Assembly: GCA_965112735.1 (NCBI GenBank)
Contig: OZ218954.1
Location: forward strand, 4,030,001-4,094,000
Source: Phaeosaccion multiseriatum
Taxonomy: Eukaryota; Protista; Ochrophyta, other classes
Direction of reading: 5' to 3'
DNA: 64,000 nt
Part shown: piece after piece, positions 48,212 through 58,344 of the stretch
Numbering within the stretch: position 1 is the stretch's first letter
Layout of the letters: each line of letters opens with the position of its first letter
The notes under the pieces: model-generated
The model's database searches: none
Told to the model about the DNA's origin: nothing
What the model saw: only the letters and a program-made list of their open reading frames with translations
Program-made: the position numbers and the translations under genes

Positions 48212-49150
48212 ATGGCGGACGCGATTGCGCGGCCGGCGAGGAGGGTGGTAATCGTGGGGGCAGGGCTCTCCGGCCTCGTGGCCTGTGAGAGCATCGTGGA
48301 GCAGCCAGTACCAAGCGCTCTTGAAGCAGCAGGGAGGGGGCCCGCAAGCAGGAAGGAAGGACTCTCGCCCTCATCCTCGGAGGCGATGGCACCACTCCGG
48401 CGCCATCTGCGCAAGCCGCGGCCTCCGCCACCGCCACCGCCGGAGTAGGAGGGAAGCCTCCCGGGGTAGGGGGAGGGGCTACGGCCGTTGACCTTGGCGC
48501 GGCGTGGATGTGGCCAGAGAGCAATCCCCGCCTCTACGCCCTCTCCAAGAGACTAGGTAGGGCATGAGCCAGAGCAGGCTCTCTCTTGGTCCCATCGCGG
48601 CAGGGTAGCTCCCAAGGAGTTGATTTACGATTTTTTTTAGTTGTTGTTACTGCTGCTGGGGTATCAGGCTGCGTGCTTTGGGTTTTCCCTGTGTGTCGTG
48701 GTGACCCCCCAATCCGTATGGGCACCCAGGCTTCACACACAAAGCCCCTCTGGTACCATCCATGACCAAAACCGTGCCTCTCATTGTTGCTTGGGACAGG
48801 GGTGGAGAGCTTCTGCGACGAGGGAGACCCCTCGCAGCACAGGTTCACAGATGGCTCACACGCGCTGTCGGTGGAGCTGGCCAGGCGAGTGGGGCAGGCC
48901 GGAGGGGGGGGGGGGACAGGACAGGGGGGCAGAGGCAGGGGCCGGGCGGCGAAGGGGTGGGGGTGAAGCTGGTCTTAGGGGTCAGGATGACAACTGTGGA
49001 GCTTGTCCCCGAGGGAAGCAGTGGCAGTGGCAGCGTCCTCGTTTCTTACACGGAGGAGGAGGGGAAAAGAACGGAGCGCAGCAGCAGCAGTAAGACGCAA
49101 AGGTCAACGAGAGCCGATGTGGTGGTGTTTTGCACACCACTAAAGAAATG
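48212..49150 (+). pseudogene. Flavin-dependent amine oxidase-like gene, apparently frameshifted and 3'-truncated
   Basis: RVVIVGAGLSGL (Rossmann motif) in one frame; VDLGAAWMWPE.NPRL (48487) in another; later HRFTDGSHALSVELAR and ADVVVFCTP. No C-terminal half is seen before the next gene. Confidence 0.6.
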
Positions 49151-49222
49151 TGAAAGACGTGTGTGTTTTCCAATAGATCATTCCATTCTTAAAGAGCTTT
49201 GTTAACCTCTAGAATTTCCCTT

Positions 49223-50154
49223 CTACCACTTGCTTCCGCCCTTGTGTCCCTTGCCGCCCTTGTTCTTCTTGCCGCCCTTGTTCTTCTTGCCGCCTTTGTT
49301 CTTCTTGCCGCCCTTGTTTTTCTTGTGAGTGACAAGCGAGGGAATGGGAATGCGTGTGAGTGAGGAAGGAGAGGGGTGGGGGGAACGAGAAAGAGGAAAG
49401 ATGGTGGGGGAAAGACAAAGGGGAAGTAACCCACCTTTCCGTCCTTCTTGCCTCCCTTCTGTGTGAGTGACAACCGAGGGAGGGAGGACATGGGAGAGGT
49501 GTGCGAGTGACAAGGAGGGACAAGAGGGGGAGGGGTTAACAGAGGGGGGGGGGTGGAGAAATGCAAAGAACGTGAAGACAGCGGGAATGGGACACCAATG
49601 AAGCGAAAGCGAGACAGAGTACCTTTCCCCTCTGCGAGAGACAAGCACAACAAGACAAGCGAGAGAGGGAGAAAGAAGGGTGTGTGGTGGTGGGGGGAGA
49701 GACATAAAGAGGTAAGGACCTACCTTTCCCTTGCCCTTTCCCTTGCCGCCCTTCTGTGATGAGAGACAAGCGAGTCATTATAGGCAGTGAGAAGGGGAGA
49801 AGATTTGGGGAAGGGGGGAAGGTGAATGCCAGAAGAGGAGCGGCAGAGAAGGGATAACACAAAGGAAGCGCGCTAAGCTTTAAAATGGTATACCTTGCCC
49901 TTCTTGCCCTTGCCCTTGTCGGAGCTGCTGGAGGAGGAGGAGCTGCTGCTGCTGCCGCCGGAGGAGGACGACAAAGAGGACGAGCTGTCCGGCGAGCTCG
50001 AGTGCTGAGGGGGAGGGGCAGTCCAGGTCCCCAGCCTTCGGGGCTGAAGGGGAGCCTCCTCGCGCGTCTTCAGCTCGTCGTTGGCGGTCTCGGCGGTGGC
50101 CTGGTTGATGGCGAGGAAGGCCAGGAGGGCGGTGCCGAAGAAGGAGAAGCGCAT
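49223..50154 (-). CDS. Secreted Ser-rich/Lys-Gly-rich protein A with RRL motif and micro-exon tail (silaffin-like composition)
   Basis: Exons 50154-49894 (signal peptide, PRRL, poly-Ser, DKGKGKKGK), 49753-49724 (KGGKGKGKGK), 49631-49623 (RGK), 49458-49435 (KGGKKDGK), 49321-49223 ((KNKGGK)x4 GHKGGSKW*). All introns are phase 0 GT-AG. Confidence 0.8.
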
Positions 50155-50358
50155 GGTGTTCAGGTGAAGGTCTTGAGGTAGGCTGTAGGAGTGCGGGTTG
50201 GTTTGTGATCTGATCTCCTCTCTTGGCCCATGGCTGGATATAGCTAACGCCACCCAAAGCAATATTTCATTTTTAACGCGCGGGGTTTTGCAAGAATAAC
50301 AACGCGCGGGCCCGAGCATCTCGAGCAGTTGGGTCTTCGGACTCACAGAATTACTGAC

Positions 50359-50722
50359 TTACTGGAACCCTTTTATTCCCCCCCCCCTTTTATGATATTG
50401 GCTCTCCGACTTCACCACTTTACCACCATCCCTGCCTTTTCCTTTTCCCTTGCCGCCTTTCTGTGAGTGAACACAACAAGAGAGAGAAGAGACGGATGTG
50501 TGTGAGTAAGAACTGTGTGAGAGAGAGACGGAGAGGGGGAGAAGCGCGACGTGCCTTTCCCTTCTGCGAGAGACAAGCGGGGACAAGCGAAAGGGGGGTA
50601 AGAGAGAAGACAAGAGAGAATTGAGATGTATGTGAGTGACAGGCGATAGACCAGCAAGACAAGCGAGAGTGGAGTACCGCAGGGATGTAGCAACACACCT
50701 TTCTCTTTCCCTTGCCGCCCTT
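50359..50722 (-). pseudogene. Orphan 3' Lys/Gly micro-exons of a disrupted family member
   Basis: 50722-50699 KGGKGKRK; 50563-50555 KGK (GC donor); 50460 onward KGGKGKGKGRDGGK. Introns resemble those of genes A and B. Confidence 0.65.
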
Positions 50723-51209
50723 CTGTGAGGGGCAAAGCGAGAGAGAGTGAAGGAGAAGAAGGAGGTGCGTAAGCGAGAGGAAGCGAAGCGAGTCCATTCA
50801 CGAAGGAGCTGCTCACTCGTACGTAGGGTTTCCCCCGGAAGAGAGCGCGATGAGAGCTTAAATTAACTATAACTAAAATTATGTACCACAATCACTGAGA
50901 TATATCTATATACAGTCCATCCTACATACATCTCACCCTTCCCGAGTTACCCAACAGGCTCCATCTCCCATTCTATTCCATTCTATTCCTTTCCATCCCA
51001 TACTATCCGCCCTCCGCACAGAGCGGTGCATATTTTAATTAATGAATTGAAGCCTCCCCACCCCCTAAGGCCTCCCTTGGCTGGCTGGCTGGCTGGCTGG
51101 CCTGCTCTTCTACCATGACAGCACCCTCGGAGTTGCCGCCCCCCAAGTTCACCGCCATCAGCGCACCGTCATCAGACTTTGCCAATTCCTCTGAGATGTA
51201 GCCTGAGGA

Positions 51210-52509
51210 CTAGTCTGTGGCCCAAACGTTAACGTTACTCATCGGTGAGTCCGGGGGGGTGCGCGCTGCAGCTGAGGCTGCGAGGCATCCATTGGAGGGC
51301 AGGCCGAGCTCCGAGCACTCCCCAGGAGGGTTGCTGACGAAGTACGTCGGAGGGCTGTGTTTGCTCCAAGGGCGGCGGGTGAGCGGCATGGGAGGGCGAG
51401 GTTCGTGAGACGGCAAGAAGAAAGTCGTAGGCGGCGAATCCAAAGGGGCGCAGACAGAGCAGAGAGTTAGGCCCGTTTGGGGTGTGTGTGGAACCAGCCA
51501 GGCAATCGGGATGAGCCAAGGAGATGCAGTGCCCTGAGTGGAGGGTGCCTGCAAAGCAAGTGAGAGGCGGCACAAGCGACAACAATCCTGTGCAGCGTGA
51601 TAAGAGATTCGACTGTGCTCACCATGCGCCATCTTCCCCTGGAATGCAGCACGAGGTGGCAATGTCACTGGTGGCGTCGTACGGCCTGTACACCTGAGGA
51701 GGCCAGCCGAGCAAAGAGGTTCAGAGGATCAAGCAAAAGTGCGCGACGGCGTACGTGCCGTGAAAGGAAAAGCATAAGGCTCACCGGCGGTTGGCAGGCC
51801 CGTGCGGTTTCGCAAGTCACTCGAGAGTGGCCCTTGGCACGAACGGAAGAGCAAGAAGCTTCGCCACTGCACACCGCACTCGCGCAGCACGACTGCTCGG
51901 AGTCCTCTCCTTCCAGAGACTCGCACAGATTGATACCCCGAGGAGCGAAGCACGACACGTGCGAGACGCAAAGGGCTCAGGAGGCACCAGTACGGGGCGG
52001 AAGAGCGAGCAAGAGCGAGAGAAAGAGTTGCTTGTCCGACTACTCTCGCAACATCAGTAATGCTTCTTCGTCTCTCTCACCATGCAGCTGTTTGGTCCCC
52101 GGCACAAAGCGGTGGACTGACTCAGAAGAGCTGCGCGAAAGCATGCGAAAGCGTCCTCGCACACCACACGTGAAGTCCCGCTGAAGGTGGTGAGACGACA
52201 GCTGTCCTCCCCGCTGCAGACCACGTTGCAGTTCTCAAAGCTCTTGATGGAGGGCTCAGGGTCCCACACGCTACTGCAGGCATTGGAATCTGCCCCCTCT
52301 GCCGTGGGCAGGAAGGGGACGGAGCAGACGAAGCTCCTGTCTTCCGTGGGGTCGCAGGCGCACGTTTCGTACAGGCCACCAATGGTCGCGTCTTCCCGAT
52401 ACGCGTTAGCATCTCCGGTGAAGTGCACGCACGCCTCTTTGAAGCTGAGGCTGCTGCCTCCCCCGCTGAGGAGGACAAGGCCCAGCGCCGACAGCCGCGC
52501 AGTCATCAT
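51210..52509 (-). pseudogene. Secreted Cys-rich repeat protein, diverged copy 1 (exon-2 acceptor AG>GG, early TAG)
   Basis: Paralog of 52988-54520. Acceptor reads cctcggggtatc versus ccccagggtatc. TAG at 51212-51210 lies upstream of still-homologous MAVNL..VM coding. Confidence 0.6.
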
Positions 52510-52987
52510 TAGGACCTCGTCTCGACTGGATCTTAGCGAGAGCGAGGGGCAGAGAGTCAGGAGACTCGCGAGCCCACCCTCCAGCTATATCAAGCCTGCC
52601 CTCAGTTCCCCTCCCCTTATCGCTATTCTCTCCTGAAATTACTCTTGTTTAGCGCCAACACTTCTTGGGCAACTAGTCGGGCTTCGGAGACTCACAGTTG
52701 TCGAGGGAGGCTTCCAGTCTCACCGCGACATGGACGGCCTTGACTCTCTGAATGCAGTGAGCTGCGCGACAGTGTCTGTAGCGACTGATGAGAAGACGTG
52801 AAGCGAGTCTAAGGCTGCCTCTGGCTTCCTTCCTCGTAAGCAGAGCCAGCGGTGGTGAGGGAGCGAGACGGGAGCCTTTTACATTTTATACAATTAATTT
52901 ACATGAAAGGAAAAGAGAAATTGGATGCTAAATACCTATCCCTCCACCCCCCCATCCTCAGTCCGGTCTTATTAGCTGGCTGGCTTG

Positions 52988-54520
52988 CTACTGTATCATG
53001 ACCACCGTCTCGAAGCCAACTTCCTCTAAGTTCACCGCCAACCGCACTCCCTCCCCAAATACAATGTCATCATCGTCTTCCCCCGTGTAGGGTAGCACAG
53101 TCGGCCCCTCCCAGTAGGATGCCGCTGCCGGCATCTCGGGGCAGCTCTGTGCAGGCAGGCCGAGCTCCGAGCACTCCCCAGCGGCGTTGCTGTGAGCGGC
53201 ACGGGAGGGAGAGATTGGTGGGACGGTGAGTTGTAAGACGTCCACAGCGACTCCAAAGGGACCAGGCAGAGGAGAGGGCGGTGCGGAGTGAAGGGAAGCA
53301 GGTCAGGGCAGTGAAGGTGAGCGAAGGGGAGAACCAAACGCAAGAAGAGAATGAAGTAACCAATGAAGATGAAATTCCCGCGAAGAGCAGGGCCAGTGGG
53401 CACTCCCAGAGAGAATGAGGGAGAGCGCATTCAACAAGAAAGCCTTTTGCGCGTGCTGAGCGGCATCAGGAGACGATCAGCCCCTCCCCAACCCCCCCGT
53501 GTTGTGTGACGGGGACACTGCACTGTGCTCACCATGCACCCTCTTCCTCCGAGATGCAGCACGACGTGGCAGTCTCGGCACTTAAATATGAGGTGCGCTC
53601 CTGCAGAGGATCAGACAAAGTGTTTGAGCGGCGTGCGGGCGTGGCAGCAACAGACAGACACTTCACTCGTCATTCGTAAGCACCCCCCCATCAATGGAGA
53701 GAGGCAGGCAGTAAGCAAGCACTTGCGTACTCCAGGCCCGTGCCAGCGAACCGCTTGGCGAAGTATTCTCCTCACCAGCGCTTGGCAGGCCCGTGCGGTT
53801 TCGCAAGTCACTCGAGAGTGACCCTGGGCACTGATGGAAGAGCAAGAAGCTTCGCCACTGCACATCGCACTCGCGCAGCACGAATCGGAGTCCTGTCTTC
53901 CCTCTCCTTGCAGAGACTCGCACAGGTTGATACCCTGGGGAGCGGAGCACGAGACGCACGAAAAGCAACAGGCAGTTTCAGGAGGCAGCAGCCAGTACGG
54001 GGCGGAAGAGCGAGCAAGGGGTAAGAGAGCAGAGCCGCGTATCGGAATTTTGTAACACTCAGCAATGCTTCTTCGTCTTTCTCACCATGCAGCTGTTTGG
54101 TCCCCGGCACAAAGCGGTGGACTGATTCAGAAGAGCTGCGCGATAGCATGCGTAATCGCCCTCACAAGCCACACGTGAAGTCCCGCTGAAGGTGGTAAGG
54201 TCACAGCTGTCCTTCCCGCTGCAGACCACGTTACAGTTCTCAAACGTCTTGAAGGAGGGCTCAGGGTCCCACACGCTACTGCAGGCATTGGAATCTGCCC
54301 CCTCTGCCGTGGGCAGGAAGGGGGCGGAGCAGACAAAGCTCCTGTCTTCCGTGGGGTCGCAGGCGCACGTTTCGTACAGGCCACGAATGGTCGTGTCTCC
54401 CCGGTACGCGTTAGCATCTCCGGTGAAGCGCACGCACGCCTCTTTGAAGCTGAGGCTGCTGCCTCCCCCGCTGAGGGGGGCAAGGCCGAGCGCTGACAGC
54501 CCCAGCTTCAAGCCAATCAT
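52988..54520 (-). CDS. Secreted Cys-rich CxGxxSC-repeat protein, copy 2 (~287 aa, 4 exons)
   Basis: Exons 54520-54086, 53934-53776, 53600-53533 and 53189-52988 join in frame. Hydrophobic N-terminus; repeats VCSGKDSC, ACEGDYAC, LCRGPNSC, MCSGEASC, TCETARAC. Confidence 0.78.
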
Positions 54521-55974
54521 AATTCACACGTAGTCTGCCCTGGAGCTTAGCGAGAGCGACGTGTGCGGGGGGAGTGGAAGAGACCTGATGGAGGGATGAA
54601 AGTGGGAGGGGGGAAGCAAATCAGCACCAACCTCGATTCCCCTGCGATTCGACAAGGATAGAGGGTCCTCGCGGTCGTGCTACAGAGATAAAAAATAGAA
54701 GTACGAGATAGAATGCCAAGATGAACGGGAGCGCGTATATTGCAGCGAGCTTCCCTGAACTCCCCCTCAGCAGGCGCAAAAACGCAGCGCCTGGCTGCCT
54801 GCAAAATAGACTTACCTTTGCCTGCTCCAAGGATCTTGGTCGTGCGGGTGAGAGACCTTGTGAGGGGGATAAAGCGCAATGGCAGCTCTGGGGGAGCAGA
54901 GCTCGTGTGTGTCGTTAATTTTGTAGTGGTGTTTTGCTCTTCCCCCCAACAGGCAAGAATTAGCGCGAACTGGTTGTCCAAACTTGCGTCGCCAGCCTGT
55001 ATTCTCCTCCCCCCTTTTTCCCTTATCATTCTTGGGGAAAAAATAGGCAAGTGAAAAGGCTATAAGAGCGGTATCGACCTGCACCTTACAGACCCAGTAT
55101 ACACTATCCTTGTCTAAGGTCTACAGCTCTTTGCGCCCAAAAAATGGCTATTTTCTTCTGCTTGGTTTTGCGCGGTCATATGGGGTGGGAGGGGGGTGGA
55201 CTTGGTGGGTGGGGGGTTGGGGGATGGAGACCAAGGGCAATGCAGTGAGAGAAGCACAGAGAGAGAGAGTGAAAGAGGGAGAGGGACAGAGAGTGAGAGG
55301 GAGATGGAGAGAGGGAGAAAAAGAGACGGTCTGACTGCGAGAAAGAGCAAACCGTAGAGGTGTATGGGGAGAGGAGGCTGTGAATGGGACACACACCGCT
55401 TACCAACTCCTGCAGCCCCAGCCAGGGGGGGGGGCTTAGTCAGGCTCGTCGCGTAGAGAGTCATACTTAGCGGTACATTCTGTAACTGTTGCTTATGTTG
55501 CCCTCCAATTTTTTGTGTCTTTACATTGAAAGAAATCGATAGGAGATAGCCATTCAACAGGAGACCTACCACTGGGAGCAAGGCTGTGGTAGTGCATGCA
55601 CTCTCTAAACCCGTTGAGTATTGTCGCGCTTTAGCACAGGACACGCACCCACGCACGCACCCGCTCACTCACTTCCTCCCTCATTCACGTCCTCAACCAT
55701 GTGATGAAGCGGGCACTGAGCTCCGACGGCACGCGATATATGAGAGGGTCTTGCTGGAACTGCAGCAATCGCTTTCCAGGCCGGGGGGCAGCCAGCGCAG
55801 GAGGGTGCACCACCCGCCCTAGTGAGTTTCTGACTGACTGCCCTCCCCTCCCCTCTTGGACCCTCACAAGTGCTGCTTGCTCTGTTAGCGCAGTGCTCGA
55901 TGCAACGAATCTGCGCAAGATGACGGACACAGCGGCGCGGGTTCCGGCGTACGCACACCGCAGACCCTCCGGAG

Positions 55975-56222
55975 GCCTGACGGTGTACGACGCGGTGGCC
56001 AAGGGCATGGAGGAGGTCAACCTCGGCAGCAGGACCATCAGCACCAAGCAGTGCCTCTCCTGGTTCAACTTCAGGTGGGTGGGATGGCAGTGAATGGAGG
56101 AGGCGGAGGAGGAGGATGGCAGTGGATGGGATGGAGCGGATGGAGAAAGATGATGGCAGTGGATGGAGGTGGAGGATGGCATTGGACCATGAAGTGTGAG
56201 TGTGTGACTCTACACGCGTACA
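55975..56222 (+). pseudogene. Captured fragment of ettA (exon 3' part plus following intron; copy of 46521-46736)
   Basis: gcctgacggtgtacgacgcggtggcc...tggttcaacttcag|gtgggtgg plus the intron with atggcagtggatgg motifs; only a few substitutions and one small insertion. Confidence 0.88.
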
Positions 56223-56360
56223 AGGCCAGGAGGGCGGTGCCGAAGAAGGAGAAGCGCATGTGATGTCGGGGGGTTGCAAAGATATACTTAATACGCGCCG
56301 CGCAGCATCTCGAGCAGTTGGGGCTTTGGACTCACAGAATTGTTGACTTACTGGAACCTT
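56222..56360 (-). pseudogene. 5' stub (MRFSFFGTALLA and upstream region) of a disrupted Lys/Gly micro-exon gene
   Basis: 56222-56260 is identical to 50117-50155; 56268-56360 resembles 50280-50372. Confidence 0.8.
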
Positions 56361-56669: not shown

Positions 56670-58344
56670 TCACCACCACTTTCCCTTTCCCTTGCCGCCC
56701 TTCTGTGAGTGACAAGCGACAAGAGCGGAGCGAAGAGAGGGAGGTGCGTGAGTGAAAAGTGGTGAGAGAGATACAGAGAGACGCATGGCAGGCACAACGT
56801 ACCCTTCCTTTTCCCTTGCCGCCCTTCTGTGAGTGAAAGCAACAAGAGAGGGAGGTGTGTGAGTAAGACCTGTGAGAATATGACAGAGAGAGGATAGAAG
56901 GAAGAGGCGGAACAGACCTTTCTTTTGCGATGCTTCTTTCCCTTCTTGTTCTGATGATAAAGTGAGAGAGAGTGAAGGAGAAGTAGGAGGTGGGTGAGTG
57001 ACAATCTAGACACAATCAAGAAAAGCGAGAGGATAGAAGGAGCGGAACACACCTTTCTCTTGCGATGCTTCTTTCCCTTGGACTTGTCCTTGGAAGAATC
57101 CTTGCTGTCCTTGGAGGAATCCTTGCTGTCCGAGAAATCCTTGCTGACAGATGCTACTGTCCACACAGGCTGAGGCGTGGGCTTTGGAGTGGTTGGGGGA
57201 GGGGAGGAAAAAGAGGGGGTTGTGGGGTGAGGGGAGGAGGAAGGAGCAAAGGTAGAGAGAGAGGCTGAGCAGGATACATGAGGAGGCTGGTCTTCTTCAT
57301 TTGAAGCAGCACGAGGTGCCTGTGCCACGGGCAAAGCATGGAGTCTCTCGAGGCAGTGAATGCATACATCATACCTTTGCGGTCCACACAGGCGTGGGAG
57401 CGGGAGGGACTGGGGCTGGACAGGCGTAGACGTCAAGTCCGTGGTAGGTGCCGGGCGCACGGCAGCCACCAGGGGCTCCAACACAGCCGTCGGCGGAGTA
57501 GTCATCCTGACACTCGCCAGTGGTGTCGGTAGCAAAGTTGCACTCCGGACGGTGCGGGTTGAGGCCTCCCTCCCTGCAGCAGACGTAGCAGGAGGACATA
57601 GGGGCAGGGGTCGGAGCCACGGGAGGGTCCGTCCAGGTAGGCTTGGGCGTGGGAGGAGCCCTCCAGATAGGCGCAGGAGTGGGTACGTATGTGGGCGCCT
57701 TGGTGGGCTGTTGTCGGAGGAGCGAGAGCCGAAAGATTGCAACAGATGCGTGAAGTGGCGCCGCGGGGAGGTGGAGTGGGAGGGGTGAGGAGAAAGTACA
57801 GGCCGGGCGAGGTTTAGCGGTAAGCACCAAGACGAGGTTTCCTTCATTGTAGTCTAGCGGGAATGCGACGAGCATCGGTGCCTCTGAGGAAGTAAATTCT
57901 GACCTTGTAGGTGGGTGCCGGAGTAGGGTGCATCGTCGGGGTGTACGGCGTGTTGTTGATGGGAGAGGGGCGGCCGGAGGGTGGCAAGAGATGCGAGGCA
58001 CACGTAAAGTGCCGCACGAAGTGGAACGACGAGGGGAGGAGGAACAGGCAGAGGCAGAGGGGATCTTAAAAGCGGGGGCTTCTGGTCTTGCTTCTTTTAC
58101 GGTAGCACAGGAAGCACATGGGCCTCTTGGACCATTGCTGCCTTACCTTCATGGTAGGTGCGGGGGTAGTCCCCGTCCAGACAGGCGCGGGAGTGGGTCT
58201 AGACCAGTACCGGCGCCACGGTGACGACCTCAAACTCCTGCGCTCAGGGTCGCGCTCACTCGGCTCGTCGTTGGCGATGGCCTGGTGCATGACCAAGAAG
58301 GCCAGCAGGGCGGTCACGAGGAAGGAGAGCCGCATGATGCTCAT
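56670..58344 (-). CDS. Secreted protein B: signal peptide, RRSLR, PTPAP/Trp stalk, small Cys domain, SKDS repeats, Lys/Gly micro-exon tail
   Basis: Exons 58344(or 58335)-58147, 57707-57375, 57169-57053, 56950-56918 (NKKGKKHRKRK), 56826-56803 (KGGKGKGR), 56702-56670 (KGGKGKGKWW*). All phase 0 GT-AG. Confidence 0.8.

Follow-up and report, generated by a model that had tools for sequence, protein, structure and literature searches.

Gene A and its genomic neighborhood

The 64,000-nucleotide stretch of DNA analyzed here (hereafter, the window) contains a predicted gene (gene A) for a small protein rich in Lys, Gly and Ser (Protein A; 21%, 19% and 17%, respectively, with two Trp and no Tyr in 140 aa), along with a paralog, Protein B, and several fragments of related genes (Table 1). 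The first exon of gene A encodes the signal peptide, a pro-segment, a Trp/Pro unit, a Ser block and the first eight residues of a Lys/Gly-rich tail; the remainder of the tail is encoded by four small downstream exons.

Table 1. Coordinates of gene A, the encoded protein segments and related sequences (window positions unless a contig is named)
Feature	Coordinates	Strand	Description
Gene A (Protein A)	50154..49223	minus	five exons, 140 residues predicted
Signal peptide, residues 1-21	50092..50154	minus	from sequence inspection and AF2 helix 4-24
Pro-segment, residues 22-42	50029..50091	minus	C-terminal R-R-L (codons 50029-50037)
Ser block, residues 51-79	49918..50004	minus	22 Ser in 29 residues
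Exon 1	49894..50154	minus	87 codons from ATG at 50154; 3' border AAG/GT
Intron 1	49754..49893	minus	140 nt, GT..AG
Exon 2	49724..49753	minus	30 nt, phase 0, 10 Lys/Gly residues
Intron 2	49632..49723	minus	92 nt, GT..AG
Exon 3	49623..49631	minus	9-nt micro-exon, R-G-K; identical in the 98% copy (L002)
Intron 3	49459..49622	minus	164 nt, GT..AG
Exon 4	49435..49458	minus	24 nt, phase 0, 8 residues, KGGK and KDGK
Intron 4	49322..49434	minus	113 nt, GT..AG; acceptor AAG, a less common form
Exon 5	49223..49321	minus	32 codons (49321-49226) and TAG; C-terminal S-K-W
Leaderless Lys/Gly-tail fragment	50359..50722	minus	immediately upstream of gene A, with a Cys-rich gene on its other side
Truncated A-type leader stub	56215..56259	minus	15 codons, downstream of Protein B
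Protein B (paralog)	56670..58335	minus	leader with R-S-L, micro-exon Lys/Gly tail
Other leader stubs (three)	contig C5 4095380-4095424, 4106175-4106219, 3949892-3949936		

The putative signal peptide, which was already recognized in the earlier note, combines a basic n-region (Arg at residue 2) with a hydrophobic core of 14 residues and a cleavage box of the A-x-A type (A-T-A) that is followed by Glu at position +1; it is nearly invariant across 10 paralogs. The signal peptides of ochrophyte plastid proteins carry an aromatic residue at position +1 after the cleavage site; the Glu in Protein A (Lys in some paralogs) is not aromatic, so plastid targeting was rejected. A nuclear Lys/Gly-rich protein, similar to histones or nucleolin, was ruled out by the conservation of the signal peptide. 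The pro-segment had been described as acidic and ending in RRL; the RRL end holds (residues 40-42, with G-T-W-T-A-P-P-P, including a conserved Trp, coming next), whereas the acidic character does not, given that five acidic residues face four basic ones (net charge -1). The tract of more than 20 Ser that the same note listed is present as 22 Ser within 29 residues, with a longest unbroken run of 11. Ser is encoded by AGC mixed with TCC, TCG and TCT, that is, by both codon families, so the block is not a simple triplet repeat, and an origin by simple slippage is disfavored.

The Lys/Gly tail starts at residue 80 and comprises 61 residues, only one of them Ser, with a net charge of +29. Six KGGK motifs are present in Protein A; four of these belong to KNKGGK units in exon 5 that are encoded by an 18-nt tandem repeat, in accord with the KGGK/KNKGGK repeats reported previously. 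The DNA pattern encoding KGGK occurs 14 times in the 64,000-nt window compared to 0.84 expected. In the AlphaFold2 model built with an alignment of ten paralogs, only residues 4-24 form a helix, and the rest of the chain is unstructured, with pLDDT near 50; Protein A is thus predicted to be intrinsically disordered beyond the signal-peptide helix. Because the C-terminus is not hydrophobic, a membrane or GPI anchor appears to be missing, and the mature protein is likely soluble and secreted.

Several sequences adjacent to gene A belong to the same family. The leaderless fragment immediately upstream of it consists of three micro-exon-like pieces (50722-50699, 50563-50555 and 50460-50359) whose borders resemble splice sites, the middle one being followed by GC rather than GT; this fragment is either the 3' remnant of a B-type gene (see below), which is the reading we favor, or is spliced to the upstream Cys-rich gene. 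The frame of that Cys-rich gene passes through ATG|GTAGAA near 51110. The leader stub downstream of Protein B and gene A have about 90 nt of upstream sequence in common, and in the ancestral unit an A-type gene probably came after a B-type gene. The middle part of Protein B consists of a Pro/Thr/Trp stalk and a Cys-rich exon (57375-57707, minus strand; 111 aa, 7 Cys) that has no match in Pfam. Also on the minus strand, a tandem pair of multi-exon genes (51040-52520 and 52990-54520) encodes Cys-rich products with a signal-peptide-like start; the two share long identical stretches and differ at their 3' ends. Among the large open reading frames of the window that were scanned, the only domains detected were LRR, ankyrin and kinase.

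Predicted exon-intron structure of gene A

A single open reading frame covers only residues 1-87 of Protein A, and the tail requires removal of four introns. The tail exons, 9 to 96 nt in length, consist of whole codons in phase 0, and every border is of the AG/GT form. In the A-type genes (see below), the Lys/Gly code remains in frame solely when exactly the modeled introns are removed, and all 15 introns of the five modeled A-type paralogs are of the GT-AG type. The 9-nt exon 3 is the least certain element of the model; the frame survives skipping of this exon. A motif similar to TCGCTTGTCACTCACAG recurs at the 3' intron ends of gene A, the upstream fragment and Protein B (minus strand; 49322-49338, 49459-49476, 49632-49647, 49754-49772, 50568-50579 and 56703-56718), and its core has 9 matches compared to about 1 expected. 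This shared motif indicates that the tail was enlarged by duplication of exon-plus-intron cassettes, whereby the introns were copied alongside the micro-exons.

A copy of gene A that is 98% identical lies about 114 kb away, on the opposite strand of the same contig (C5). The sole exonic indel between the two is one 18-nt unit and is in frame. The mismatches number 5 in 423 exon columns and 12 in 512 intron columns; at a divergence of only about 1-2%, selective constraint on exons relative to introns is not visible in this comparison. Four public runs from one sample cover positions 48800-54700; all the contigs are DNA, continuous and free of splice joints, for example, across the intron segments 49390-49529 and 49545-49712. 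From the exon borders and the reading frame, the shared intron motif, the layout and charge kept among the paralogs, the near-invariant signal peptide and the mixed Ser codons, we infer that gene A is spliced, and we presume that it is expressed. Contig depth in these DNA runs is about five-fold above the flanks at 49982-50178, the leader of gene A, and loose contig ends at 50117 and 50159 run into paralogous copies; both observations agree with the 15 copies of the leader in the genome that are described below.

A family of paralogs with a conserved layout

When a profile of the leader was run against the 67-Mb genome in six frames, it matched eleven complete leader exons and four stubs of 15 codons each. 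Nine of the eleven full leaders are located on contig C5 and two on contig C3. Those on contig C5 form two mirror-image groups, one on the plus strand at 3.937-3.966 Mb and the other on the minus strand at 4.080-4.126 Mb, an arrangement reminiscent of a large segmental duplication in inverted orientation, the right arm of which carries additional B-type copies. Six members are of the A type (leader, one Trp/Pro unit, Ser block and Lys/Gly tail), of which five could be modeled cleanly; the other five, the B type, combine the leader with a Pro/Thr/Trp stalk.

Between the A-type subfamilies, the leaders are no more than 62-70% identical. Across the five modeled A-type paralogs, the number of exons is 2, 4 or 5, and the repeat unit is KGGK, KGKGKK or RGNKGK. 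The length, by comparison, stays within 134-160 aa, the Ser run within 11-16 and the tail within 52-66 residues with a net charge of +24 to +32; the order of the blocks, Ser and then Lys, is kept in all five. Conservation of layout and charge despite the turnover of sequence, repeat unit and exon number points to selection on the layout and charge rather than on the sequence itself. Within the nearly invariant signal peptide, codon 2 occurs as each of the four synonymous CGN triplets, and the remaining substitutions are conservative. Paralogs contain Ser-Pro-Pro-Pro and, in addition, long Pro/Thr stalks, compared to the single Ala-Pro-Pro-Pro unit of Protein A.

In four of the five subfamilies, an RxL motif (RRL, RSL, RML or RNL) lies shortly before the conserved Trp, on its N-terminal side, whereas the fifth contains only an earlier REL and no RxL at the Trp. 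This recurrence hints at conserved processing at this position but falls short of proof because the motif is so short. One member, L005 (contig C5, 3937437...), differs from its mirror copy L006 in that the reading frame of the Arg/Lys/Gly tail exon shifts at eight consecutive G. This frameshift is due either to decay of the copy or to a homopolymer assembly error; hence some copies in the family may be decaying.

Searches for homologs and the reality of gene A

No relatives of Protein A were detected outside this genome in any of the collections searched. Exon 1 of gene A had no match among 5.8 billion proteins (length range 48-152 aa); a leader profile of 57 positions derived from 10 paralogs had none among 1.84 billion representatives of any length; a Pfam scan yielded only sub-threshold, low-complexity matches; the top score in the ESM Atlas, 0.76, was below the useful level; and exact look-up of the unspliced 93-aa frame returned no record. 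As far as these collections reach, the A/B family appears to be lineage-specific.

These observations bear on the possibility that gene A does not work, that is, that it is a low-complexity or decaying duplicate, is unexpressed, or is spliced otherwise than modeled. The public runs found are DNA, and neither of the two large protein collections contains such a protein; family debris is scattered around, namely, the leaderless tail fragment next to gene A and the four 15-codon stubs; one paralog has a frameshifted tail; and gene A and its close copy are too similar to reveal constraint. However, the frame of gene A is intact, the introns of the modeled paralogs are GT-AG without exception, and the exonic indels are in frame. 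Furthermore, length and charge are kept across diverged paralogs, and the signal peptide shows synonymous variation. We therefore consider a non-working gene A quite unlikely; that gene A is a real, lineage-specific gene is part of the interpretation that we tentatively prefer (see below).

Silaffin-like features and the search for silicon transporters

The earlier note ascribed to Protein A a design similar to that of silaffins and cingulins. Two sequence screens for silaffin-like proteins have been published: one, by Scheffel, requires a signal peptide together with Ser and Lys contents of no less than 18% and 10%, respectively (PMC3478156), and the other, a signal peptide, repeated KXXK motifs (X = S or G) at intervals of 1-6 residues and pentalysine clusters (PMC5501833). 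Protein A passes both, with 19.3% Ser and 25.2% Lys over the 119 residues past the signal peptide, and with four of its KGGK motifs in exon 5 at a 2-residue spacing and any 12 residues of that exon containing 5 or more Lys. In addition, RxL is common to the precursors of diatom silaffins, cingulins and silacidins (PMC4557024), and the family conserves such a motif. To this extent, the proposed design stands; the cingulin alternation, in contrast, is absent, and Ser and Lys are segregated. What these comparisons probe is composition and motif rather than function.

If Protein A were a silaffin-type protein, cleavage at RxL would release a chain in which phosphorylated Ser and polyamine-modified Lys of KXXK drive and pattern the deposition of silica, for instance in a cyst, scale or wall. 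The two screens, the KGGK motifs with pentalysine clusters (PMC3478156, PMC5501833) and the conserved RxL after the signal peptide, as in diatom precursors (PMC4557024), are all compatible with such a role, and the lack of detectable homology is not decisive because silaffin sequences are unconserved even among diatoms. However, these screens are purely compositional, and most of the 89 candidates that they yielded in T. pseudonana are uncharacterized. The Ser and Lys blocks of Protein A are separate, and neither KSSK motifs nor Tyr are present. Furthermore, a six-frame search of the 67-Mb genome for the SIT family (PF03842) gave no match, with the same method retrieving 25 exon-level matches to ammonium transporters (PF00909) as a positive control, and a search for CitMHS/Lsi2-type transporters yielded one unconvincing 23-bit fragment with four stops. 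SITs and SIT-Ls occur in siliceous stramenopiles and are lacking in those non-siliceous ones that were examined (PMC5100055), the latter being the pattern seen here. Altogether, a role in silica patterning seems very unlikely.

The search for SIT/Lsi transporters proposed in the earlier note thus turned out negative, with a working control in the case of SIT, and the biomineralization reading found no support: there is no SIT and no homolog, and Ser and Lys occupy different blocks. The wall, adhesive or polysaccharide-binding role that was offered in the same note as an alternative appears to fit better. Plain poly-lysine precipitates silica (PMC4557024), and a silica-precipitation assay cannot discriminate between these possibilities because any polycation, poly-lysine included, scores positive.

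A putative role in the cell covering

Taken together, these features lead us to prefer, tentatively and with slightly less than an even chance of being right, the interpretation that Protein A is a secreted protein specific to this lineage, which serves in the matrix, the wall or adhesion and is anchored through the cationic tail. Under this scenario, the signal peptide would bring Protein A into the ER, and the short leader would probably be clipped at the conserved RxL before the Trp. The Ser block would probably be O-glycosylated or phosphorylated in the secretory pathway, yielding a hydrated or anionic spacer, and the tail would bind anionic extracellular material electrostatically, be it acidic or sulfated polysaccharide, the cell surface or the substratum. 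Protein A would then contribute to the cell covering, mucilage or glue instead of forming silica. The sequence features, the family and its conserved layout are observed; secretion, cleavage at RxL, the modifications and the binding partner are what we infer from them.

The support for a matrix or wall protein is indirect. Relatives with the same leader and tail contain Pro/Thr/Trp stalks and a Cys-rich exon, which are typical of wall or matrix glycoproteins; the neighboring genes encode secreted-type Cys-rich and Pro/Thr-rich products; and the genome encodes carbohydrate-sulfotransferase-type enzymes, at least two of them above the Pfam cut-off, which makes sulfated glycans plausible partners of the tail. 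The absence of SIT, as in non-siliceous stramenopiles (PMC5100055), points in the same direction. Weighing against this interpretation are the lack of a homolog of known function, the 9-nt exon, the AAG acceptor of intron 4 and the frameshift in L005.

A related but more specific possibility is an underwater glue for attachment that self-coacervates through pairing of a phosphorylated Ser block with a Lys/Gly block of the same or neighboring chains. The precedent is Pc-3A of the sandcastle worm Phragmatopoma californica, in which a phosphoserine-rich N-terminus is followed by a Lys/Arg-rich C-terminal block and which undergoes complex coacervation, with Lys/Gly/His-rich partner proteins (PMC9999432). 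The order of the blocks is identical in Protein A and, as pointed out above, invariant among the modeled A-type paralogs, and disorder is predicted as well. However, the Ser would have to be phosphorylated (a search of the genome for Fam20C-type secretory kinases gave zero matches, which says little because the control was silent too), balancing the charge of 30 basic residues with about 23 Ser would take near-complete phosphorylation, and there is no Tyr/DOPA for curing. Such a glue is therefore unlikely.

Precursors of antimicrobial peptides typically follow the order of signal peptide, pro-piece, processing site and cationic C-terminal peptide. Protein A shows this order, and the family has duplicated recently and varies in copy number, as defense families often do, so that one could think of a secreted polycationic precursor from which the Lys-rich tail is freed to act against bacteria or grazers. 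Against this possibility, the pro-piece, with its net charge of -1, is not anionic; the tail consists almost entirely of Lys and Gly and has no hydrophobic face for membrane insertion; the 29-residue Ser block would have no role; and the relatives with stalks and Cys-rich domains point to structural proteins. A defense function hence appears clearly improbable.

If Protein A is indeed made and secreted, the sequence rules that pick silaffins also select proteins in an alga without SIT, which calls for caution in genome-wide screens for 'silaffin-like' proteins and might provide a pointer to a pre-glass role of such proteins. A far-reaching extension of this view is that the 'silaffin grammar' (a signal peptide, RxL and low complexity rich in Ser and KXXK) is older than silica walls and was co-opted later by diatoms, the role in the present organism being organic, with charge-driven self-assembly (coacervation or binding of acidic polysaccharide) producing a covering or glue; we regard this scenario as speculative and unlikely. 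Regardless of the function, the family illustrates how charge and length can persist through changes in sequence, repeat unit and exon number. Given that the two-block layout of poly-Ser and poly-Lys is found in worm cement as well, the family may be of interest to researchers working on bio-adhesives.

Comparison with known systems

The Protein A family is an orphan, the design of which is already known in kind. With the silaffins and silaffin-like proteins (Sil1p, tpSil1-3), Protein A shares an ER signal peptide followed by RxL, a high content of Ser and Lys, repeated KXXK with X = G, pentalysine clusters, and the lack of a globular domain and of a conserved sequence. In contrast to silaffins, which interleave Ser and Lys in zwitterionic units, Protein A keeps these residues in two blocks, without KSSK and without repeated peptides bounded by RxL, and the host genome lacks SIT. 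The resemblance to cingulins consists of the signal peptide, RxL and a KXXK-rich region, and the B-type relatives additionally contain Trp-punctuated segments; however, in cingulins, KXXK regions alternate many times with Trp- or Tyr-rich domains, whereas Protein A, with its two Trp and no Tyr, shows no alternation.

Hydroxyproline-rich wall glycoproteins and mucin-like proteins (extensins, Lys-rich arabinogalactan proteins or AGPs) resemble Protein A, which is likewise predicted to be secreted and disordered and to carry Ser/Pro/Thr segments that are likely glycosylated. In wall glycoproteins, acidic wall polymers are bound by a basic region, and a comparable one is present in Protein A; it is much longer and carries far more charge than that of plant Lys-rich AGPs, and Protein A has no GPI signal.

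The closest described layout appears to be that of sandcastle-worm Pc-3A, by analogy of design and not by ancestry. Pc-3A comes from an animal, its Ser phosphorylation has been demonstrated, and it functions in a glue together with Tyr/DOPA partner proteins, from which Protein A differs by having no Tyr. Pc-3A also meets the Ser/Lys composition criteria that Protein A passes, and, similarly to Pc-3A, Protein A is predicted to be a secreted, disordered protein in which N-terminal poly-Ser is followed by a basic C-terminal block.
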